Below are positions 3,459 through 45,700 of a stretch of 48,420 nucleotides of DNA, one piece after another. The DNA comes from Intoshia linei (Eukaryota > Animalia > Orthonectida). Where the stretch lies: the NCBI GenBank assembly GCA_001642005.1, contig LWCA01000141.1, forward strand, positions 1 through 48,420. Direction: 5' to 3'. The notes under the pieces are model-generated. The model was not told the origin of the DNA and searched no databases. It saw only the letters and a list, made by a program, of their open reading frames with translations. The position numbers were made by a program, and so were the translations under genes. How positions within the stretch are numbered: position 1 is the stretch's first letter; every line of letters begins with the position of its first letter.

Positions 3459-6400
3459 CTATTGTGTTTTGTACTTATTGTCATCCAAGTTATGTTGGTT
3501 AGAATTGGTATCATAAGAGTAATTGGTATAGTCTGTATTGACTTTAATAGAAATGTTTTCAATATTAGAATTTGAAGAGGATTCTGTATTTATTTTGGTA
3601 TTGAAGCATTCTTTGCGGTATAATGAATTACAATTATTTCTATTATTGAGTGGATGTTTGTACATATTTATATCAGTAATATTAGGATTATTTGAGAAGC
3701 CATATTGAATAGTATTTCTATTTGAAAATCGATGACGGTTATTTTCATTATCAAATAAACCAGAAATGTGTGCGTTTGTTTCATTAGGCTTGTGGTAACA
3801 GCACGTGGGAATGTAATCAAATAAATTCTCATTTTGATTCTGGTTCTGATTTGGTATAAACTGGTTTAAGTAGTGGAAATTTTCAATTTGTGGTAAATTC
3901 ACCTTATTTGGCATCATGTAAGAATTTGGAACCCTCATGGCATTATAGTTTACATTTGAGTACTGGTTTAACAATCCACTTGTCCCATTTACCAAATTTC
4001 GCATATTTTGAAATTGTAATCCTTCGGAAATGTTAGGAATACTGTTTCGGTATACTGGAAAATTTAACTGATTATTCATGATTCCATTTTTGGATGTACT
4101 ACAATCGTAAGAATGGCTTTGTTTTATATCCATTTTTTTAAAGTTGTCTTTTTTTCTTAAATTTACGAAATAGTCAAATGTACTGCTTTTTGTGTGTGCT
4201 TTGTTTCTATTTCTGGTTTGTATAACTTCTTTTTTCATTGATAGTGGACGTTTTACCTATATTAAAAAATTAATAAACGGTTGATGTGAGTTTTATAAAA
4301 CTTTTAAAATTTTTTCCATATAAAAAATAAAAACATACCAAAATGGCCTCAAGATCTAATATACCTTTCATTATTTAAAAAATGCTTCTCACCATACTTA
4401 TTATAGGGTCTACGTTAAATGTTTCGTTAATTGAACCATTAATTATTTAATTTTTTAAATATCAAATGAAATAAAAATAATAAATTTTGAAATTTTAAAC
4501 ATCCATCATAAAATACATAGTTTATTAGTCTATTTGTTTGTAACCATTTATTTAAGAAAGTGAGATGCGTAGAGTTTTAAAAACACCAATTTTTAATACA
4601 GTTTTTATAAGGTGAGGTTATGACGCAAATTTCATTTTCAGAATGGAGTCCTTTAGGGTCAAAAACTGAAAGTATCCTTTTTTTAAAAATCAAAAGATTC
4701 TTAAAATTATTGAAAAATCACCTTTACTACAACTTTTTCCAGTTAAAATGTATAAAAAATAGCAATGTCACAAAGTGAAGCCTTCACAGTCAAAACAGCA
4801 ATTTACTTTTCATTATATTTTTTTGGTAAAATTACAAAAACTAGTCCTCAGTAGAGCTAGGTGGTGTGTGTACGAAGTACATAACAGTCAAGCTAGTGTT
4901 GAAATAAGAAAATTAATTAAATCGAAAACAGTTTAAAATGTAAACAAATGCATTTTATATATCCGTAGGCTATATTTAATTGGCCATTAAAACAAAAACA
5001 TGATAAATATAATTACTAGTATATTAAGATTTCATGAATAGCTCTGGATTTGACACTGAATAAACATATAGGGAGATAGGCGGTATGTGTCAATACTTTC
5101 AGTGTAAATTGCATCATATAATTACAATAACGTAGAAACATTTCAAAATTTAAATTTGATAATCTGTAATTTACCATTCACTGTTTATCCAAAAAGTGTC
5201 ATAAATCTGAAATCTTAATTAGTCGTTTACTTAATTAAATTTTTGTTAATTCTAATCCTAATCCAAAATATTATCCTATAATATATTCTAAAGCACATAC
5301 TTAACATTAATATTATACATGTTATCATAATGAACTGCACATATTTTTGAATATATATTTATTAAATTTTTGCAGCATGTTCTTCAACCAAATGTATTAA
5401 TAACAATTTCAAATTTATGAATATGAAATTTTGAAATTTAAAAAAATTGATTCATCTGATATGTTGAAATACTTGCAACAATATTAATACACTCTGTACT
5501 AAAAAAATTAACAATGTATGATAAACATTCTTTATAGTAACCGAACGAAAAGTTTGTAATATCCGTTGTATTTTGATATAATAGATAAAATTGTTTTAAA
5601 ACACAATGGGAAACCAAATGAAAGTTACCAACGACTGATGACAATAAAAATTACCAGTGAATAGTTTAATTGTAGCGATAATTTTACTAAATACGCTAAC
5701 CGTTACAAGCTAAGCTTCTCAATTTAGGATTAATTGTTAAGGATAATTAATAATATGGGTAGATTGACCGCAAAATAGGATTATATTATCTGATTACATC
5801 AACTGATTTAATGATAAGAGTGTTTACGTTATAATGGTAATAAAGTTAAAAACCAAACCAAACTCAAACAAACCCAATGGACAGTTACACTTGCGAATTT
5901 GAGATACAATTGGGATTAAATGAAATTTAACAATCAATCACGCCACATGCAAACATGAATATTATATAAAAACTATAAAACGAAAACTGAAACAAGATAA
6001 ATAATGAAAAATGAAAAATAACCTTGTGAAGTTTATAATACAGACCACAGGCATTGCAAACGGCATCTCCGAGTTTATTTCTTCGCCACAATGTTGTTTG
6101 GTGAGTTCCACAATTTTGGCACTTTACATTAGTTTTTTTTGAAGGTGTCTACATTAGGTAAATTAAAAATATTAAATATGTACATCAGTTATAATCTGAT
6201 GGGCAGGTGTAGTAACAATAAAAAGTAACCACTTAAAAAAAGTAAATGTTATAATTTAGAAGCAGATGATACCAAGATTTATGGGCAACGTCTTATCATT
6301 GATATATGTTTTAGTTAAAGATAATCTTGAATATAAACTGATTTATGGCTCATATATCATATTATCTGATTTTAAATGGTATATATCGATTTAATATAAA

Positions 6401-8869
6401 TTTAATTTAATTTAAAAAAGATAAATTAAAATATTTTATAAAAAGAATACATTCAAAGGTTAATTTGCGATGCGTTTCGACAGTTTTAAATGGTTAAATT
6501 TTATTTTATTTGACATATTAATCAGTTGATCTAATCTCGTTAAAATATGACGCTTTTGTTTTAATGTATATTGTATGAATTAATTTACCAGTCTTTTTTT
6601 TAATTTGGATATAGGCCGATTAGCGTTATTCATTTTTCTAAATAAACCGCATGCATTACACAAATATTGTCCATTATCATTTGCACGGCGCCAAAGAGGT
6701 GTTTGTGTAGTACAACAGTTTAGACAGGTCCTTTTTGAATCTATACAAATATTAGCAAAATTTAAAAATCTATTACATGTATTATGTTGGTAATTTGTAA
6801 TAATAAGGTTAGACATAGCTTCAGGTTATCAATAAATTTTGTTGAAATTAATATCATGTCAATACCAAACAAAATGGAAAATGCCAAACAAATTTTACCG
6901 ACACTTTTTAACATGTAATTAAATTTTTACATGGTGAAATGAAAATTTTTAATTTTGTTAAATTATTAATACATTATATATTTATCAAAATTAATATTAA
7001 AATACATTTTTTACCAATTTCAATTTTTTTGGAGGAATTTGTTCGATTTGTGTAATTCACAGAAACATTGGAATCATTAATGGGTTGACATGGTACAGAG
7101 CGTCGATTTTGTAGATATTCATTTTCTGGTTTAAATTCTAAGGTACTCAGATCCAAACTTTTTGAATCACTAAATTTTAAGTTGGAGGAATGAGGAATTT
7201 GATATTTTTGCTTTTCAATAACATTTTCCATGTGGTCGTCGGTTTCGCATTTTAATTCGTTAGTAAAATAATTAAACCTAAATGTCATTTTTTATATTTT
7301 AATTTTAATATTTTTTTACCCATCAATTTTTTCACAAATTTCTTGGTGTTTGACTTGTTCCATGTCTTCAATATTGTACAGTAATTTTTGGTTTACGGTG
7401 TCACCTTTATTTAATACTTGGTTTGTCCAAAAATTATCGCATGTTTTTGTTTCCAGGCTGTTATTTTCGTTCAAGTTATTGGTATACTCTAAAAATGAAA
7501 AATGAAAAATGAAAAATATAAAATATAAAATATTAAATTAAAAATGAAAAATTAAACTTTGCATTGAAGAGTTTTAGAAAAGTTTTGACATGCTTGTATT
7601 GTTGTCTGAAACGTTTATATAATATAGTAGGCACTGGTCAGATTATTATTATAAACCCATATACAAATAAAAATAAAAATATTTTTTGGTCCCGTATTTA
7701 ATTCCATTGCTTAATCTGACAATTATAATAGCTGAGGTCCTATTTCTAATTTACATGATAAAAATTAAAAAAATTACACAATAAAAGTTTTTATTAATTT
7801 TAAACTATTGAACATTTGAACATTCCAATTTTTCAATTTTTAACTCACAAAATGAACAAAATGAAAAAATTACTTATTAATATATAATTTATAATATAAG
7901 ACCCGTTGAGTGGATCCAGTCACACGCCTATGATTTCTATTTTATCATAATCATAATTATTATCATTATCCTCTCGGCGATGATTATCTCGTGTGTATTT
8001 GCTACCAATTCTGTCATGTTAGAGTTGAATTTTGCTCTCATAATTACGCATCTACAGTTCGTATTTGCAAATGTACTATATCGTTTACAGGGCCCTGGAA
8101 AAACAAAAGTAGACTAATATAACCGATTAAAAGATAAATTAAAGTTTCCTTGATTCAACTAAAAAAGAAATTTTCTGAAAATACCTATTATTGTATAATT
8201 TAGAATATTATACTTAATAACAGGCGATAAAAACGTAAGACCCTACTCTCCATACTCTGACCGTTGACCTTGAAAACAAGGTCATGGAAAGGCAAAAATT
8301 GTACCAAACCAGATTAATCACCCATTATTAGATTCAACAAATTATCATTAGCACTGACGATTAAAATTAAATTAAAAATTTTGATGAAATAGCAGCTCCA
8401 AACTTGGAAATACAAAAAATTATTGAATAATTTAAAAATTACCTTGCAATTTTAAATTTTTAAAGGAATTTTCGTTAATTTGTTTGTATTTATTTTGAGA
8501 AAAAGAAAAATAATTGGTACCGCCATTATTTTTTAAATAATTTCCGTTTGTTTCGTTAAACGATTGATTACTGAATACACAATTTTTAATTGACGCGTTT
8601 TGAATATCGGAAAAAGTGGTTGAATTTAAATTTTCCTTTGCATCTTGTACATTTAAAAAATTTATCGGTTGATAAAATGTATTTAAAGTTTCATTTTTTT
8701 TCGTAATTAAATTAAAATTTTTTTCATATTCTAACGGTGTAATGTGATTCTTGTCACTGTCCACATTTAGATATGATTGTGTTTTACCATTTTCCAGTAA
8801 TTGTTCAGATTCCGTGTCGTTCTTTGAACAATTTGATAAAGTTTCATCAAGAATAGAATGTGAATCCAT
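3459..8869 (-). CDS. GATA transcription factor, GATA1/2/3 (grain-like) class, two zinc fingers, ~644 aa; exons (5'->3') 8869-8443, 7488-7320, 7277-7015, 6740-6589, 6148-6023, 4256-3459
   Basis: All introns are GT-AG with compatible phases (1935 nt total). N-finger [27 protein letters not shown]-finger [33 protein letters not shown] (exon 6148-6023, absent from the ORF track). Basic tail [17 protein letters not shown]; YYKLH and TRNR match the GATA1/2/3 class rather than GATA4/5/6 (TRKR). The three N-terminal exons rest on splice phase and open frame only. Confidence 0.92.
4502..4896 (+). mobile_element. Short non-autonomous Helitron in the last GATA intron
   Basis: A|TC start at 4502. The 3' end GAGCTAGGTGGTGTGTGTACGAAGTACATAACAGTCAAGCTAG|T matches the family terminus. 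Confidence 0.75.
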
Positions 8870-12186: not shown

Positions 12187-12940
12187 CTATAACTTTAACA
12201 TCAATATTTCATTTTGTACTTCTTTATTAACACTATTATGAATATCTAACTTTGCATTTTCCATTGATTTCAAGAAACAATTTTTGATGCATTTTATTGT
12301 TACATTAATCCAAGATTTATTAATCCACATAATGGAATTGTAACATGTAATTTTTTTACACCAATTTTCTTGTGAAACATCTGTGCTTGACGTTTCATAG
12401 CATAGTGATTTCATTGATAATTTTTTATAATTGTCCTTGAAAGAATAATATTATCCCCTGGTCTAATGGTTGAATGAGTGCAGTGGTATTTAGAGGAAAA
12501 TAAAATAGTTCGATATTACTCAATTCTATATCTTTCAGATGAATTACCAATGACATCCAAGCTTTTAAATTATATTCATATTTTACAGGTAGGTTACTCA
12601 TTATGATATTTTTGAAGCAACGTGGCTTTTTCGATTTTGCAATGACCAATGGCTGCAATTTTTCGCCTTTTATGCTAGCCGCAAGCAAAATGGTCATTCT
12701 CTCCTTTGAAAATTTTCCACTAGCTTTGTCTTCTGTACCATAAACAAATGTTTTGTTACTACTGCATTTATAAAATAGATCAGTTTCATCACAATTAAAG
12801 ATGTGAATTTTGTGTTGATCCAGTTTTAACTTGTATATTTCCGAAAAGTTTAAAATACTTTTTTTACTGACAGATCGCAATTCACCAACTATTTTGCGCG
12901 ATGAAATCATTGCGATGAGTAGAAGATTTATCTTCATCAA
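12187..12940 (-). pseudogene. pogo/Tigger (DDE_1, CENP-B-like) transposase relic
   Basis: IFNCDETDLFYK, SKERMTILLAAS, KSKKPRCFKN, KAWMS, FPLNTTALIQPLDQGII. The HTH region and the segment with the second catalytic Asp are missing, and the frame is broken after DQGII. Confidence 0.88.
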
Positions 12941-15822: not shown

Positions 15823-18800
15823 TAGTAATCTATTGAAGTTACTGCTAGTACTTAATATCATTATCTCGTTGCAGAATTTATTTATAACTTCATTTTTATG
15901 AGCTATACCTACGATTACGTTATTATATTAATAAAAGAAATTTCGGAAACCCAAAAACTGGTTGTCACCCCTGGAGTGCCGGTATCAGGTTAAGAATCTA
16001 CATAATCTATAATTTACATTACTTTTTTCATAAAAACGTAAAATATGTTAAACTTAACTTAATTTAAAATGGAGAGATTGACATAATATTGTTCATGTAG
16101 TCCAGGCATTCTCAACCCTTTTCACTGTAGACCCCTACAATGATATTAAAAAAACTTGTGAAAAAACCTGATTATAAAATATATTGTATCGTAACTTACG
16201 ATTTATTTAAAAATCACACTTTTTAATACAGTTTTTCAAGAGTGATGCTGTATCACTGATGCAGTATCGAAAATTTCATTTTGCGAAATTAATTTCTATA
16301 GAGTCAAAAATATACCATAAAAACATAAGATTAAATAAGTAAATTTGATAAACCAACAACTAAAAATTCCACGGATGCTTTTTTTTAAACTTTTAAAAAA
16401 CTCAATGATTCAATGTTTATTCCTAATGAAGTTGTCATTTAATAAATTTTTTTTCGAATTTGTTAAAATAGGATATGAGGATTCGAACAGAGAAATTATC
16501 CCCATTGATCATTAACCATATAAAATTAAATTTTTAAATTAATGTACATAATGATGTATTACTTAGTGATAATAATATATTAATTTGTTTGAGAGTGGTA
16601 GAAATCAAAATCATTTCTGTTATTTATTTTTTAATACATTTTAGAGATAAAATCTTTTAAATTTAAAAAATAAATAATTGAAGAAATATATTCTTCATTC
16701 ATCTTATAATTCTTTATTAGTAACTTTATTGAGTCGTTTTTTAATTCTTGACCCAGATATTTGAGTCAATACTTTTTAACCAAATATAAAGAAATAAATG
16801 TAAGTATAATAAAGTCACATTCTTGTATATCAAACTTTTGATTCAATATTATATGATTTCGTTTATGAAAAGTTTGTATATACCAATATACTTTAAATTC
16901 TACAGAATTTTAACCATTTAATTTTTTTTTTAGTGGATATAATCATTTAGCCCTTTAAGGAATGCATTACACATATACATGTAAATTTATTTTCACGAAA
17001 TTTATTCATTAAACATATACATGTAAATTTAATTTTACGAAATTACGATACACCAATATATCTACGTTTACCTGGAATAAAGTTCATTTCTAATTTATTA
17101 ATACACTACAATACAATAAACCCTACTCAATATACACGATTTTGTATAAAACTTAATACATTTTATCAAATTGTTTGCAAATCCTATTTTTTTAATTTTT
17201 TTATAAAATGTTATTTTATCAACACGGGGACCATTGCTCCCGGAATAAGGCATGGAAATATTATTAGATTTATTTTGAAAAATTATTTGCCAATAACGGA
17301 GGTTTTATATAAAAATCAAAAGAAGGATAGTTTTTGTGATTGAATAATGGAATCGGTAAAAACACACTAAAATTGATTCAATTCCCTTTGAAATTAAACC
17401 AATTAAAGACTCTAGTTCAAAAAATGCTAATGTGAAATAGTACGAAGAATGTTAATTATGCCATAAATGGCATATCATTACACTTATTGTTGAATAGCGA
17501 AATTTACAGATAATAAAAAATAGTAATTTTGTATATACATGTTGGTTTTATTTAATCCTTCCTTACATCCAATTCAATGGGAGTGAGATATAAGAGTTTG
17601 TGTGTTTGCAATCAGAAATTATTACATTAAGAGTTTTGCATTTTCCAAACACAAAATGAAATTTAATTTCAATCTTCAATGTCAAAATATTACCAGTTTA
17701 CCATTCGTTATTTTGCAAATTATTTTATTGAAATAGAAATTATTGAAATAGCCCTAGTTAAATACTCATATAATTTACCTCAAACGGAAAATTTAAAATT
17801 CAAAATTTAAAACAAAAATATGATAAATTAAAAAACTCTCAACATGTGTTCATAACGCGGTATATAAAAAACATTTTGCACATATATAATAATACATATA
17901 TAATGATTAATAATAATCTTAAATTGTACATTAATCCAATTTTGAATTTTCCGTGTCAAGTCTAAAGAAATATCATTTATTAAAATAAAAAATTAATAAA
18001 AATATTTATTAAGCATGTATAAATGAATGGTTAAAAATATCACTATAATAAAATTAATAATAAATTGAAAGTACATTTTAGTATTATATCCAATGAGTTG
18101 TAGATGTAAATTAAATTAAAATTTACTTTATATAAAAATAGAGAAAAATTGCAATATTGTTTGTTATTAGTTTCATTAAAATAGCTAACATGTGAGAGTT
18201 TTGATAGATTTTACAAGACTCATTTACAAATATATACCAGTAATAAGCTAACATTTATTGACAGTTGAAATTTATTTGTAAAAATTAAACGGTGTCTTTA
18301 ATTTTCTTAATTAATAAAATGTAAAAATATCATGTTTTTTTTCAAATGTTTTTTTAAATTATTTGTACATTGTCAATCTATTCATTCAACGATAATTTAT
18401 AATTTACAATGTACATTTGTAAATTTATATAAAAACAGTTTAAAATAATTAAAAATTACAAAATGATAGTTTTTATAGATATTAATACAATCGTTTTTTA
18501 AAAACTTTTTAATTTACAATTCTAGTTTTTAACATCATTCAACCTTAAAAATATGTTTAATGCGACTTTGAATAAAATTATGTGAGGTTTACATATTGAC
18601 CAAATTATAATGTAAATATTTAAAATTATATCAAATACAATTTATGGCATACATCCAAAATCAAGTAACAAAACTGTAAATTAGTATTTAAGTATCTGCA
18701 TCTGTATTTTAGCATTTCAATTTTCATTCAATTTTTCATTTTTCGTCAATATAATACGTGTTGTATTAACAATATAAAATATATAATGTAGAATATCAAA

Positions 18801-36700: not shown

Positions 36701-39700
36701 CAGTGGCTTTATCTTGAACCTATTTTTAGCTCTGAAGACATTAATTTACAATTACCGGTAGAGAGTAAAAGATATCAAACAATGGATCGCATGTGGCGAA
36801 AAATTATGAAAAATGCAAAGGATGATCCGATGGTAATATTTTTAAATTTATTTTTTATTTCTAAAATTTCAAATTATTGATAAGTTAATAAAATTTTTAT
36901 TAGGTTATTTCATTATGCCCCGATACGCGACTCTTGGACAATTTAAAAGAGTGCAACAAATTATTAGAACAAGTACAAAAAGGTTTAAGTGAATATTTGG
37001 AAACGAAACGTGCAGCTTTTCCCAGATTTTACTTTCTATCTGATGATGAATTACTGGAAATACTTTCACAAACAAAAGATCCGACTGCAGTCCAACCACA
37101 TTTACGAAAATGTTTCGAAAATATTGCAAAAGTAATTTTTCAAACATCAATACGCACTAGATATCAAGATTATGGAACCATTTATATATGATTTTATTGT
37201 TTATCTAAAAAAGATTTCCAGGATTTTTGTTAATGATTGCAAAGTATATCTAGGAAATTTTTTAAATATATTTTTTGAAAAATACCGACTACATATGATG
37301 TGATCAAGAATCACCGACTGTATCTAAATTTGTTTATTTAAATTTTTTTAACATATACTTACCAATTTAATTAGTTGGAATTTCAAGATGATTTGCAAAT
37401 TACAGCAATGTTCAGTGGTGATGGTGAAAGAGTACCGTTCTGTGAAAAATTGTTTCCAACTGGAAATGTTGAAGATTGGTTATTGCAAGTTGAACGTGTT
37501 ATGAAAGCAAGTATTCGGTCCATTCTGGAAAAAGCTATCAATGAATATTCTGACGTATTTAAAATTAAATATAATAATTGCAATGTAGAGTCACTTACCT
37601 GTCGGGTTTGCGATATATTGTTTACCCACCTTATTAACTATACAATATTATGTCTGGTCCTATTTTCTCACTCAATTTTAAGGTATTAATGAGTTAGTGT
37701 TAGGGTTATTGATTGTTTACCTATTCAATACTTACACTTTTCAATCTGCCCTAAAAACGAAATTTGAAGACATTTTTAGAGTAAAGTTTGCAATCTTTTT
37801 GTCAAGCGGACTGGTCTGCCGCTGTATTGGTATAAAAAATATATTATATTTTTGAGTAAGAGTCATATCTAACAGGTACTTCCAGCGTTGTCAGTGACAA
37901 CTTGACATTATACAATTTTATACGTTTATAAAACTACATGACTCACATTTTTAATTAATAGGAAAGTCGAATGAAATGGGTGCTAATGTGGCCTGGTCAA
38001 ATTGTTATTGCTGGCAGTCAACTATTTTGGACTCAGAATGTTACAAATTGGTTAACTAAAAATAATTTATCAGAAGGATTAAATATGTTTTTAAAGCAGG
38101 TATTTTTATTTATGTAAACCAGAGGTTATAAAGTAAAAACAATACAATTATAGTTAAAACCCTCAAAAAAAATTAATTCATGTTGAAAATCTAACTTAAA
38201 AATCCTAATATTCACTATTATTAATCCTTTAAATGAGGGGTTCCCAAATTTGTTTCAGGTGGAACCATCATATCATATTACTTTTTACTTTAAAGTGAAT
38301 TATTCCATCTTAATTTGTCATTTTCAATGTGATGACATATATTCAGTATCAATTTAATAAATACTTAAAAATACCAATTGTGTATCAATAATTAACTGAA
38401 TCTTCACTTTATAAATATTTCAGTCAAATTTTACCATTATTGCAAAGAATTGTAATATAAAAATGATATTAACAAAGTTTTTTTAGTTTTGTTGTTGTAG
38501 TTTCTTATTTAAATTTTAATGTTTTAATATAAATATTTTGAAAATGTAAATTTGAAATTTAAAATATGCGTAGCAATGAAAAAAATTCCGAAGGAATGAA
38601 TTATATAGATTTTCACCAAGAATGCGTAGATTTCTGGGGTGAAAATTTTTTATTTATATCAACTGGAATAAGCTCCATCAGAATAATCTTCTTTTTTTTA
38701 ATTTTCAGACAGTTAATTATTTCACATTCTTTGTTTGAATAAAATATTTCGGAAAAAAAATATATTAATACTAAAATGCTTTTTTGACCGTGAAGTCGTC
38801 ACTTATTCAGATTGAAATGTTTTGTGTGTGTTAACAGATACAACTGTATCACTTGTACATTTTTTAATTCTAGTGCTGTTTTCATAAAAAAAAGGGTAAT
38901 TTGTGGTTTTGTCTCTGAAGATATAATTTTTTTAAATTTGAATTTATGATAATGTTCATGATTTTAAAATCCGTATCAGCGTATATATTTTTTTAAATTC
39001 TCTAACTCGTTTGATTTTCAAAAAAAGGACAATGCGGGTTTTTGACCCATAAGATGTGAGTTTGGGAGGTTGAAATTTATNGTTTGATTTTGCTTTAATT
39101 TCTAATAAACGATCCTCCCTGTTGACATTTTTCTTGGTCTTCCTTTTTTAAGTCGATTAGAGTTAGATCTTTTTGGTGCTTTTTAATTATTCCTTGAACT
39201 GCGCGTCTAAATATACGGAAAGCTCTCTAGCAATTTTTACTTGGGTATACCCTCTATTGAAATATGTGACAACTAATTCGTGCTTTTGTATATTTATTTG
39301 ACGCATTTAGTTGAAATTTATAAGAAGAATAATATTAATTACCTATATTTCAAAAAATATGTTTTTGAAAGTAATGAAAATGAAAGTGCTCAAAATATTT
39401 GAACAAGTAAATATTTTTATTTATATATAAATCAGTTTTTATTAAATTTAATGTATCATCGCAACCAAAACAATTATTTAAGGAATGGAATTTATGTTAT
39501 TAAGTAAGTTAGCCACTTAAAAAATTATAAAATTGAAAATTTATACAGATTGCGGCAATTTTACTAAGTGCTCAAAACATATGGACGGGTCTGTATTTTT
39601 ATAGTAATAACAAACATAAATCAAAAACAGAGGATATATTTAATATATATAGATATATTATATATTTAATAATTTCCGGGAATTAAATTTCCCGGGAATT

Positions 39701-42700
39701 TTGTCCCGGTTTTTTTTTGGCACAATCACTAGTACAAACAAGCATACGTAAAATAATTATTTTTTTTTATTTTTTTGTACATGAGGATTAAAACGAAACT
39801 TCATTTTAAAATATTGCTTGGCAATTTTTTTATATGATATATAATAATATTTATTATATATGTAACATATATTAATACTATAAAATACAAATCAAAACTT
39901 GTAACGCGTTACCCAAAATTAGTAATAAGTCAAATGTTTGACTTCGATTTTATAAAATCAATTATTATTTAAAAAAAGTTAAAGTTAAAATATAAAGGGT
40001 ATGTTCAATATTTTATTTGATTAATTAATAATAAATTTAGAAAACTAAAAAATTTTAAATTCATAAAACAATGCTTAAAAACTAGTGAACAGAGATTGAA
40101 TTATTTAAATATAAAAAGATGCAAAAAAGAAAGCACAATTGATATGCCATTAGGTATATAACACAGTACACCATTTTAAGACTTTTGATATAATCGTTAT
40201 TTTCAAAAAAAATTAGAAAAAGTGAATTTTTCTCTTAAGGGTTGGGTAAATTTGGATTTTCTCTTTATAATTAATTCCTGCAATAATATATTACTTTAGC
40301 CGTGGACACCTTTGAGAAGCAATTATTTAGACTATATTTTTTAATGTTGTGTCCCGCGAAATTTGTAAAATTTATTTTTTGACCCTCACTCGCCATGTTT
40401 TTGGACCAGCCTGGTCTATTTCATCATAATTTGTTTAATCACTAGTAATTTTTGCTCTTCAGAAAGTGACCCAATTGTTATGAAATGTTGGTCATATCTG
40501 CTGTAGAGGTTTACGTGTAAAACTCATTATAATGAGTTATTGTTTTTCTCATCTGTTTTAAATATAAATACAATTACATTTTAGAAAACATTTCTCAAAT
40601 TAACAACTTTGAAGTAGCAATAAATGAAATTAATAAAAATTACTACGATTGTGAATCAAACAAACTATTAATTGAAAAAATTGAATTATTAGTGAAAACT
40701 GAAAATTTATCAAATATAAAAAATTTACATTTAAATTTCACAAATATGCTTATTAATTTTGTCGAAAATTCAGATATTCACCTCAAATCATGGACTTTAC
40801 TAAAAAATTATTTTGAATCTAGTATAATTTTAATATTGTTTGATTTCTTTTTATTGTAGTCGATATAAATGAAATGTACCTACCAAACGAATTCCTTAAT
40901 GTCTTATTAGAATCATCTAAAGTAATTTTTAAAATTTTTTTATTTTTCTAGTTTTAATAATTTATTTATCATTTTTTTAATTGATTTTATTTTTAAAACG
41001 TATAGTTTTAGTAAATATATTTTGTATATTTCAAATTAGGTACACATCGCTAATGACATGATATTGTGCGAAATACTAAAAATAATTAAAAGAATTTCCT
41101 CTAAAGGTTAGTTTTAACAAATTTTTTGAATATATGGTAACACAATCAGACATTTAATTTTATATAAGTAAAAGGCTAACTAAAAAATTACATGAATTTA
41201 TTAATAAAATTTTTTTGAAATTAAAATTAATGAATTGTCAAAAATATCTTTGGGAATCCTGGATTTTAGTTCAAACGCTAGTTATATATATAAGGTTTTA
41301 ATTGAAAAATAAACGATTAAATATGTTTTTATAAACATGTTTAGAAAAAGTTAGTATATTCTTGGTGAAACATGAATTTTTGAATATCATTAAACTAATA
41401 ATGGAAATCAAGATACAGTCCTGTAATAATGATGAAACATCTCTAAATGTAGTGAAATTATCTCTATGCTCCTTCTGGTCTACAACCATATTTGGTATTT
41501 TACTTTTATTTTGTTTGAAATTTTTTGACTTAACAATAAAGTAAATTAAAATAATTAACAGATTCAACAAGAATACACTTTATAAAAGACAATTATATTA
41601 CACCCATTGTGGAGTTGCTTAAAAAATATACCGACCATGAAGAAATAATTAGTGAAATTTATCCCGCCATAATGTCATTAGCTCTAGAACGTAATTTTTA
41701 CAAATACCGTATAACTACAATTAGTCGAAATTTTTTCAAATTTTCGTATATATATGTATATATATGACGTACATTATGAATATTAGAATTATATGAATTA
41801 TGAATTAGAAGATTTCGTATAGATCTACTGTACTAATATAAATCATATACCATATTATTGTGGTTAGTTAATCTATACTTATTTCAGCTTCCAGTTACCC
41901 ATTAATAGTGGACATGAATATTATTGATTATATACTCCAAGGAATATTGAAATTTAAAAGATCCTCCGATTTAATAAAAAACGCAATTTGTGCAATAAAC
42001 ATTTTGTGCTCAAATAGCGGTAATTTTTTTCAAATTTACTATATATATTGAATATTAATATAATATTTTAATATTTGAATATAAAACAGAAATGTGCGCA
42101 TATCAACTTTTGTTGAACAATGACGATGAAACTGAGCATTTGTCAACAATAATAGAATTATGCTTGGAAAATATAGATTCAATTACAATGGTTGAATCTT
42201 ATATGAATCTATTTTTAGATTTGCTATTTTATGGTAAATTTAATGTGTCAGTGTTTTATCGATACATGATTAAAATATCTAAAACTTAATGTAGAGGAAG
42301 TAATGCATAATATGAAACTATTTAATATTGAAAAATTAATCTTTAAAGTTTGTGAAATGTACAAAAATAGCGATGTAATTATATTTTTAATTTTTTTCAT
42401 AATATTGAATTTTAGGATATTATGATACCTACGAAGGAAATTATGAAAATATTAGACATTAAAATGGAATAATTCGTTAAAAGACAACGATATTTAATAA
42501 ATTCGTTTTTTATTTTCAATTGTTTTGTATTTATAGTTTTTAACCAATTTTTTTGGTTTGTAAAAGATAATTACTTTATTTTATCATTACACTAGGTTGA
42601 CTGTTATGTACTACGTACTAACAGCACCTAGCTCTGCCGAGGGCACATTTTTATTTTACCAACAAAATAAATTCATGTTGAAAATCTAACTTAAAAATTC

Positions 42701-45700
42701 TACAAATCACAATTATCAATTCTTTAAAGGAGTGATTTCCAAACTTGTTTCAGGTGGAACCGTCATATCACATTAATTTTTAATTTAAAGTGAATTATTC
42801 CATCTTAATTTTGTTTTGTTAACATTTGTGTAACGAATTTTAAAATGTTGTTATCCCATTTTTTTAATTTATTAGACAGAATGTGTGTATAATATTAAAA
42901 ATAAAGTAAAAACAGTCCAATCCTAAAAATTGTCATAAATAGCATAAATTCCAAAAAAATAAAATTAGTCCAATACTAAAAATTGTCATAAAGGTGTGAG
43001 TTTTGGAAATTGAAATTTATATTATTATATGCAAAAATTGTAATAAATAGCATAAATTGCAAAAAAAATAAAATTATAAAAACCTATTTTTTGATTTCCA
43101 ATGTGATAAATTATCACTGATAATATATATTCAGTACCAATTTAATAAATACTTAAAAATACCAATTATGTATGAATAATTAACGGAATCAGCACTTTAT
43201 AAACATATTTCAAATGAATTTTACCAATATTGCAAAGAATTTTAATAAATATAAAAATTATAATATCAAAGTTGTATTACTTTTAGTAATTGTTGTTGTA
43301 GTTTTGATTTAAATTTTTATTTTAATCGAAATATTTGAAAAATATTAGTTGATAATATATTCAAAAATTATTTTTCACCGGGATTGCGTAGATTTTTAGG
43401 GTTGAAATTTTGTTTTATATCAACTGGAATAAGCTCTATCAGAATTATCTTTTTTTTTTAATTTTCGGACCGTTAATTATTTCACATTTTTTGTTTTAAT
43501 AAAAAATACATGAATAATAAAATGCTTTTTTGACCGTGAAGTCGTCACTTATTCAGATTGAAATGTTTTGTGTGTGTTAACAGATACAACTGTATCACTT
43601 GTACATTTTTTAATTCTAGTGCTGTTTTCATAAAAAAAAGGGTAATTTGTGGTTTTGTCTCTGAAGATATAATTTTTTTAAATTTGAATTTATGATAATG
43701 TTCATGATTTTAAAATCCGTATCAGCGTATATATTTTTTTAAATTCTCTAACTCGTTTGATTTTCAAAAAAAGGACAATGCGGGTTTTTGACCCATAAGA
43801 TGTGAGTTTGGGAGGTTGAAATTTATCTTAATATACGTCCCGGAAAAAAACTGTAATTGAAATATGGTCTTTAAAAAATTCTAAGATGGGTAGTTATTTA
43901 AATCAAGCGTAACACACACACAAACAAAAATCGCGTAGCATTCTATAATATGCTAATATATAATTATATAAGTTAGGATATAATATAATAACTTAAATTT
44001 CAAAAAACTGAAATTGTAAATAACTTTTCCAATGTAAGTAAATAGTGGGAATATTAGTTGGCCCATAGCGGCATTGTGGTCTCTGGTTAACGAAAATTAT
44101 TTGATTAATTTTAATAAAATATCGTTCTAGTATCAGAAGAAATGAACAGTAAATAATGTCTATAATATATATCACATTAAGAATTATTATTTTAATTTTT
44201 TAAAAAAAAATTTAGTTGAAAATTCATGATATATTTGAATTTCAACTGTCAACAAAGTATCCCAAACCTGATGATTATTATTAATAAATACAAATATAAT
44301 TGGCTATAATAATATACATATAATAATATATGTTTAATAAGCATTGTTTATTTTATAAATTAATTTCACATTCTATATTAGTTGGATGACTTACGATATC
44401 TAGTTACTCAAGATTTATTACCCATTGAACGTCAAATAATATCACCACTCATTGTCGTTGAAGTACATTCACGTGAGGTTATTCTAAAACTGATTGAAGA
44501 CAAAGTGCATAATATAAATGATTTTGAATGGATTAAACAATTACGTTATTATTGGGAAGAAAAAAATATGTCAATGAGAATCATAAATGCTTCATTTCCC
44601 TATGAATATGAATATTTAGGAAATAGGTAATACATTTCGATTTTACATAATGAAATCACAGATTGTTAACATGTTTAAATAATTTTATTCATCCTCACAT
44701 GTTGATCAAAATGATATGAATCATGCTTGAAATGAATCAATTACTATATTGAAAAATTAATTATTTCATTCAGGATTGAAAATTTGACATTATATCATTT
44801 TACTTTATTAGTTAACTAGGTTGATTGTTAATTACATAGAGCACGTAGTTCTGCAAGGGGACTTTTTTAATTCTTCCAAAAAAAATAAATTCAATTATAA
44901 AATCCTACTTAAAAATGCTACTATTCACTATTATCAATCCTTGAATGGAGTGGTTCGATAATTTTTTTCACCATGGACCGTAATTCCACATTATGTTTTA
45001 ATTTATAGTAAATTATTCCAACTTAATTTTATTTTGTTAATATTTGTGATCCTATTTTTTTAATTCTAGGACTATTATCATTTTTTAATATAAGATTAAT
45101 CTGTTGTTTTGATCGTGATTTTGACACTTTTTTGAGATTATGATTTATAATAATGTTTAAATTTTAAAAACTATTCTACAATTCATGTTGCATAAAATTC
45201 TAGGACCTTTTTAATTTATCAAAAAAAGGTTTATTTGGGTTTTGGCCGTGAAAATATCAGATTTTGAAATTGTAATTTATCATAATGAAGACTCTTTAGG
45301 CCCCTGGTGGGTCCAAGCCCCAACAACTGGACTAGATTACTGTTATGTACTTCGTACGAACAGTGTTTAGCTCTTCCCAGGGGACTTTTTAAATTTTAAC
45401 AAAAATTAATTCAATAATAAAATTTTACATAAATATCTCACAATCAGTTGAATTAAAAAAATTAGATTTATCTACATATTTAAATGTATATGGTTTTATA
45501 AAGAGCTTATTAAGATTGTTACTTTTGAGAGCGATCAATATTGTAGATATGTATACTAATTTAATATAAAATAAATTTTTAATAATGCAGTATCGTACAG
45601 TGTATGTTATTTAATATTTTAGTGGACGGCTGGTTATTACACCTTTGACGGATCGTTGCTATTTAACTTTAACTGGAGCTTTACATCTGAAATTGTAATT

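Follow-up and report, generated by a model that had tools for sequence, protein, structure and literature searches.

A candidate orphan gene of ten exons assembled in the same orientation within an intron of a DNAH1-type dynein heavy chain gene of Intoshia linei

The window analyzed here is the entire 48,420-nucleotide (nt) contig LWCA01000141.1 of Intoshia linei (assembly GCA_001642005.1, 41.6 Mb, with a guanine-cytosine (GC) content of approximately 25%). Its plus strand carries a dynein heavy chain gene, predicted from sequence matches to be of the DNAH1 inner-arm type. The model of this gene in GenBank is OAF70501.1 ("hypothetical protein A3Q56_01728, partial [Intoshia linei]"), with 2710 amino acids (aa). 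The gene leaves the contig at 48359-48420 within the AAA3 region, where the AAA_7 match ends at profile position 132 of 181, and OAF70501.1 is labelled partial because the gene runs off the contig end. One intron of this host gene, as assembled, contains all the exons of a second candidate gene, hereafter the guest. The intron and its flanking exons are:

37962-38099, plus strand, host dynein exon from the linker region, ending in phase 0 with donor GTATTT, equivalent to OAF70501.1 residues 1429-1474
38100-44381, plus strand, host intron as assembled, 6282 nt, defined by mapping of OAF70501.1 on the window
44382-44626, plus strand, following host dynein exon, starting in phase 0, equivalent to OAF70501.1 residues 1853-1933

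Comparison of the flanking exons with PDB sequences, using phmmer, aligned residues 3-40 of the exon at 37962-38099 to residues 1426-1463 of DNAH1 (9fqr_X1), and this exon matches DNAH1 and DNAH3 chains at E values of 7e-7 to 4e-6. The exon at 44382-44626, from its residue 2, aligns to DNAH1 residues 1472-1551 (E 4e-21). The gap between the two aligned blocks is 7 residues in the query and 8 residues in DNAH1, with at most about one residue unaccounted for, and the guest site in the host corresponds to DNAH1 residues ~1469 and ~1471. A preliminary description of this DNA had stated that these two exons join in phase 0 with no loss of dynein sequence, and the DNAH1 alignments, contiguous and in the correct order across the join, bear this out. 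The remaining introns of the dynein gene span 35-1314 nt, with a short class of 35-45 nt.

A script that required only GT/AG borders and a continuous frame recovered one consistent chain of ten exons between 40041 and 42472, with a total of 1171 nt and 389 open codons plus a TAA stop. The exons of this chain, together with a short upstream exon present in the public model and a downstream polyadenylation motif, are:

39979-39998, plus strand, connector exon of 20 nt with acceptor AAG, found in OAF70501.1 only and probably a patch made by the predictor
40041-40153, plus strand, guest exon 1, beginning in phase 2
40585-40821, plus strand, guest exon 2, with 78 full codons
40860-40921, plus strand, guest exon 3
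41040-41106, plus strand, guest exon 4, beginning in phase 0
41345-41494, plus strand, guest exon 5, with both borders in phase 1, corresponding to approximately one helical repeat
41562-41690, plus strand, guest exon 6, with both borders in phase 1
41888-42019, plus strand, guest exon 7, with both borders in phase 1
42090-42233, plus strand, guest exon 8, with both borders in phase 1
42295-42374, plus strand, guest exon 9, ending in phase 0
42416-42472, plus strand, guest exon 10, beginning in phase 0, with stop TAA at 42470-42472, not in OAF70501.1
42496-42501, plus strand, AATAAA motif, 24 nt past the guest stop

This independent recovery agrees with the preliminary description, in which ten GT-AG exons formed one stop-free frame of approximately 389 aa with its own stop and an AATAAA. 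Recomputed phases also reproduce its statement that direct entry into exon 1 from 38099 would be out of frame, and that phase-0 entry is possible at 41040 or 42416. The AATAAA at 42496 is weak evidence, because the non-coding DNA of this contig contains 4.3 such motifs per kb. The guest introns range between 38 and 431 nt with a median of 70 nt, sizes that fit this genome, given the short introns of the host and the median intron of 57 bp published for I. linei (PMC6543705). The guest unit is single copy in the assembly, and therefore it is not a transposon gene.

The guest had been described as hidden; however, its exons 1-9 already stand in frame inside OAF70501.1 as residues 1482-1852, with exon 2 being 100% identical, and the guest is mis-filed in the public record rather than hidden. 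An independent public gene predictor thus picked identical splice sites for exons 1-9. The way in which this model joins them to dynein is less convincing. The 20-nt connector uses an AAG acceptor, which is found in none of the 24 host and guest introns, and 27 alternative open connectors occur by chance in 38140-40005. At the other end, OAF70501.1 splices 42374 to 44382 and bypasses exon 10, whose strong acceptor, TTTTAG, lies only 41 nt past exon 9. In the solved DNAH1 and DNAH3 chains found with phmmer the two aligned dynein blocks are only about 8-60 residues apart, and therefore the aligned solved dyneins have no room for an insertion of 378 residues. A word search that covered proteins of 1490-4742 aa found no other long protein matching residues 1482-1852, and Pfam reports only dynein families along OAF70501.1, with DHC_N2 ending at residue 1422, AAA_6 starting at residue 1926 and nothing in 1475-1852. 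Because of the AAG connector, the chance connectors, the bypass of exon 10 and the lack of an insertion-bearing dynein or a matching long protein in these searches, OAF70501.1 is most likely a gene-prediction fusion, and the 378-residue insertion at ~1475-1852 is most likely not dynein.

An open chain with bare GT-AG borders is a weak criterion for a gene in this DNA, because the minus strand of the same region also yields a ten-exon chain, of 1159 nt; such chains are within reach of chance in this 25% GC genome. Furthermore, the non-exon DNA of the contig (35 kb, six frames) holds 155 open frames of at least 40 codons, the longest of 130 codons. This longest frame, at 16951-17340 on the plus strand, has no Pfam match and its translation is not protein-like. 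Another example of a long chance frame is an open reading frame (ORF) of 90 codons antisense to guest exon 5, at 41298-41570 on the minus strand.

The splice sites of the guest are more selective than bare GT and AG. Donors are GTA in eight of the nine guest introns and in 13 of 15 host introns, the rest being GTT in both genes, versus 38% of the background GT sites. Acceptors are YAG in all nine guest introns versus 49% of the background AG sites, and the host introns use TAG. The discriminating test was therefore the length of the best chain of up to ten exons with GTA donors and YAG acceptors. This chain has 1255 nt on the plus strand of the guest region and 718 nt on its minus strand; it has 456 +/- 97 nt (maximum 695) in 100 dinucleotide shuffles, 348-860 nt in 16 natural non-coding windows, and 1364-1834 nt in dynein windows. 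The guest value exceeds the shuffles by approximately 8 standard deviations and is higher than in any of the 16 natural non-coding windows; among 62 windows from other contigs, only three attain 1255 nt, one of them over a kinase gene. The length of the consensus-site chain thus falls within the range of real genes. In addition, the guest exons have a higher GC content than the guest introns (25.0 versus 20.9%), and the in-frame codon score is equal to or higher than that of both other frames in seven of the ten exons, above nearly all non-coding open frames. On these grounds we consider, with good though not complete confidence, that the ten exons represent real coding sequence.

The protein that the guest would encode is probably an orphan with an alpha-solenoid, HEAT/ARM-like fold. 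Exons 5-8 have 43-50 codons each, all with phase 1 at both borders, and their mutual alignment shows 16-22% identity with a common amphipathic and hydrophobic pattern. The AlphaFold model of exon 2 consists of four helices, and the nearest ESM Atlas clusters of exon 8 are HEAT/ARM families (0.91-0.93), a weak lead with few shared features; the ESM Atlas search with exon 2 gave no usable match. The likeness to HEAT/ARM proteins thus lies in repeat-sized, amphipathic exons, an all-helical model of exon 2 and the clusters of exon 8. The difference is that no match to that class reaches significance. In the exon-by-exon Pfam search nothing was above threshold, with Arm_3 detected on exon 2 only (15.8 bits, the cut-off being 28.8). 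Against the PDB, the profile built from the repeat unit of exons 5-8 found nothing significant, the best being the HEAT protein CAND1 (E 0.23). A phmmer search with exon 2 among 1.84 billion representatives found no homologue, only OAF70501.1 itself and one low-complexity repeat protein. All matches being below significance, no specific family can be named for the guest.

The product had been likened to the C-terminal helical region of STKLD1. This identity finds no support in the Pfam, homology or kinase searches, and no direct STKLD1 sequence comparison stands behind it. The likeness is general only, with ~390 residues of predicted helical repeats as a possible C-terminal half of a protein whose N-terminal part is missing; the guest differs in having no Pfam or homology match and no kinase domain on the contig. 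Of 147 Pkinase matches in the genome none is on this contig, and OAF70501.1 has no kinase family.

The host intron also contains several repeats and the only N of the window:

38166-39080, plus strand, dispersed repeat copy 1, without its first ~85 nt and cut by the N 121 nt before the element end, with borders taken from other copies
38772-39080, plus strand, exact duplicate stretch of 309 nt, identical to 43518-43826, directly before the join
39081, single N, scaffold join of unknown true length; single-N joins recur in the assembly
39082-39596, minus strand, Tc1/mariner fragment, the first ~514 nt (helix-turn-helix (HTH) end) of an element of ~1.55 kb, cut at the N with ~1 kb missing
39594-39731, small repeat resembling a miniature inverted-repeat transposable element (MITE), with a palindromic core, in ~20 copies of 72-78% identity
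40326-40438, dispersed MITE-like repeat of ~110 nt within guest intron 1 (431 nt, the longest), in ~40 copies of 80-91% identity
42577-43947, plus strand, dispersed repeat copy 2, full length

The dispersed repeat is a non-coding element of ~1.37 kb, of which over 40 copies were scored and 5443 first-look candidates counted in the 41.6 Mb, approximately one per 8 kb. Its copies are 77-93% alike and show no subfamily structure. The two direct copies in the intron could be taken for the ends of a long terminal repeat (LTR) retrotransposon; this was ruled out, as the repeat is an abundant stand-alone element and the interior is single copy with no match to gag, pol or any other transposon family. 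The alignment of the two copies is identical at 323 of 326 positions, with all three mismatches within the first 17 nt, and just upstream of the 309-nt stretch the identity falls sharply to 85-92%. Thirty other copies of the family share 68-90.5% identity with this stretch, most of them 87-90%; in the subfamily analysis they formed a star-like family with no signal that assigns the 309 nt to copy 1 or to copy 2. Relatives of the Tc1/mariner fragment elsewhere in the genome are 85-94% identical, and this family is a frequent cause of assembly breaks, because many of its copies sit at contig ends. Fuller copies (e.g., L026:1501-2979) contain partly open DDE_3 (E 9e-16) and HTH frames.

The exact repeat of 309 nt is best explained by re-use of a collapsed repeat by the assembler, by recombination or conversion between the copies, or by a deletion allele present in the pooled sample. 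The same pattern can arise when a piece is wedged between contigs that overlap, and of these causes this is the only one that would take the guest out of the intron. The same-strand nesting of the preliminary description thus holds for the sequence as assembled. Its physical placement could not be upheld to the same degree, since an intron that runs directly from 39080 to 43827 is a live alternative, the 309 nt being an exact copy and the left piece ending inside the repeat. If the exons are real, true nesting in at least one haplotype is moderately likely.

Taken together, we give about an even chance to the explanation that the ten exons constitute a real orphan gene nested on the same strand in the dynein intron, either with its 5' end missing or with its start at Met 40144. 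Transcription of the guest would begin within the intron, at a start of its own, and the unit would end with its own stop and poly(A) site. The pre-mRNA of dynein would read through this poly(A) site and splice 38099 to 44382, past nine donors and ten acceptors of normal strength. If 38099 were spliced to a guest acceptor, the frame would be lost at exon 1 but kept at exons 4 and 10, where truncated tail-linker products would result. The gap at 39081, on the far side of the Tc1/mariner insertion, may contain one or more unsequenced upstream guest exons; alternatively, translation from Met 40144 would give a protein of ~355 residues. A 5' part of the guest with a kinase domain could lie in this gap or on another contig, and a search of five kinase-bearing contig starts for the rest of the Tc1 element found it in none of them.

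Two sets of observations, one on the join and the other on the exons, weigh against this explanation. Regarding the first, the nesting hinges on a single-N join flanked by repeats, and it rests on an unverified join because the 309 nt to the left of the N repeat 43518-43826 exactly. It is possible, although unlikely, that the guest is misplaced: the true intron would consist of 38100-39080 followed by 43827-44381, and the 4.4-kb piece 39082-43517, which belongs elsewhere, would have been wedged in by the scaffolder and fused at ~43518 by a chance repeat overlap. The exons would then be real and not nested. The exact duplication, with its drop in identity just upstream, is what such an overlap would leave, and the left piece ends 121 nt before the end of the repeat, as if it overlapped the downstream sequence. 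The 4.4-kb piece begins and ends within repeats, and the 5' end of the guest is missing at the boundary of the piece. An intron without the piece would have ~1.5 kb, near the longest of the other introns of the gene (maximum 1314 nt).

Furthermore, contig C1435 has the same signature, where a 2193-nt piece bounded by Ns is flanked on both sides by an identical stretch of 283 nt. In C1435:10000-16000 the Ns are at 1968 and 4162, and the 283 nt that end at the first N restart at the base after the second. The middle piece is largely unique and the 283-nt duplicate is near-unique in the genome; in this case two contig ends probably overlap, around a piece that was wedged in or is polymorphic. Several points speak for the assembled order instead. 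The guest-bearing piece continues with no N through the repeat to the dynein exon at 44382, and it is single copy, so the scaffolder must have had links that placed it here. No other contig carries an empty-site version of 43948-44700, and no alternative contig continues the guest piece. In addition, re-use of a collapsed repeat, gene conversion or a deletion allele between the two direct copies would account for the exact repeat just as well, and the identity patterns of the 30 copies give the 309 nt to neither copy.

The second set concerns the guest itself. Its codon-usage score is 0.055 bits per codon, versus a median of 0.297 for the dynein exons. No homologue, paralogue or Pfam family was found for it across the searches made, including protein searches for paralogues of exons 2, 5 and 8 in its own genome. 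The confidence of the exon 2 model is low (predicted local distance difference test score, pLDDT, of 55), and so are the ESM recognition values for exons 2 and 8. No ATG-bearing first exon that fits the phase-2 acceptor was found in 38100-40005, and therefore either upstream exons are missing or the start is at 40144 from a transcription start very near to it. This ATG is the only in-frame one of exon 1, and it comes after out-of-frame ATGs at 40071 and 40119.

These observations, together with the 40-130 codon open frames that are common in the non-coding DNA and the 1159-nt chain of the opposite strand, would fit a sequence that is not a working gene, either a 5'-truncated and undecayed relic cut by the Tc1 insertion or by a rearrangement, or open frames of AT-rich DNA over-fitted into a chain. 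We regard this as improbable. The consensus-site chain lies far outside both the shuffled and the natural non-coding controls, all nine introns have host-like GTA or GTT donors and YAG acceptors, and exon GC is above intron GC. The architecture of one repeat per exon with symmetric phases also argues for a gene, and an old relic would have gained stops in 389 codons at 25% GC.

It is very unlikely that the exons belong to dynein transcripts, whether as a 378-residue HEAT/ARM-like cassette in the linker before AAA1, or as alternative 3' terminal exons, entered in phase 0 at 41040 or 42416, that would give a tail-linker protein. Such transcripts would be compatible with the phases, as exon 9 ends and the exon at 44382 starts in phase 0, which makes the splice from 42374 to 44382 in frame, and as a splice from 38099 would enter exons 4 and 10 in phase 0. 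The junction lies in a short segment left unaligned between the dynein blocks, no upstream start codon of the guest was found, and the public predictor did output this model. However, entry into exon 1 requires the 20-nt exon with its exceptional AAG acceptor, one of many open connectors that occur by chance, and the full fusion must bypass the strong acceptor of exon 10. The spacing of the blocks in DNAH1 and DNAH3 leaves no space for 378 residues, the searches found no other protein resembling exon 2 and no long one resembling the region as a whole, and both the codon usage and the GC content of the guest are unlike those of the dynein exons.

A shade less probable still is the proposal that dynein itself uses the guest exons, as a linker domain before AAA1 or in a motor-less tail-linker protein capped by helical repeats. 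A milder reading, given the same low probability, is that the 309-nt repeat marks a deletion allele of the population, where recombination between the direct repeat copies would have removed the guest and left a presence/absence polymorphism in the dynein intron.

The arrangement favored here, a same-strand nested gene, is of a known kind, with a guest that has no known relatives. An example is F8B, in intron 22 of human F8. As in the same-strand nested genes of animals, the guest is multi-exonic, has its own stop and candidate poly(A) signal, and as assembled lies in one host intron in the orientation of the host, between host exons that are contiguous. It differs from them in that it is predicted from sequence, with no promoter or first exon identified, and in that the intron has an assembly gap which leaves the nesting unproven. 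Many nested genes are intron-poor, whereas the guest carries nine introns of its own. On the side of the public record, OAF70501.1 is like other ab initio chimeric gene models, as it fuses dynein and guest exons 1-9 via a 20-nt connector and skips the terminal exon, and we found no difference from them; fusion into the host is an ordinary prediction failure for same-strand nested genes.

Other genes and elements are found on the contig. Upstream of dynein, the exons of a GATA-type zinc-finger gene are located at 3459-8869 on the minus strand, with the GATA domain at 6580-6816 (PF00320, E 2e-11), and the Asn/Ser-rich ORFs near this gene have no Pfam match. A remnant of a pogo/Tigger-type transposase is located at 12187-12940 on the minus strand (DDE_1, PF03184, E 5e-16).

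For the reading of this genome two cautions follow, as open frames and GT-AG chains arise easily at 25% GC, and single-N joins beside exact duplicates of ~300 nt mark an assembly order that is unproven. The guest is predicted to be an orphan helical-repeat protein and therefore says nothing yet on cilia or sperm. OAF70501.1 is likely in need of correction, as its residues ~1475-1852 would not be dynein, and this matters for phylogenies of the Intoshia dyneins and for motor-domain comparisons. If the nesting is real, the guest would be one more multi-exon gene nested on the same strand as its host, in the compact and fast-evolving genome of a parasite.

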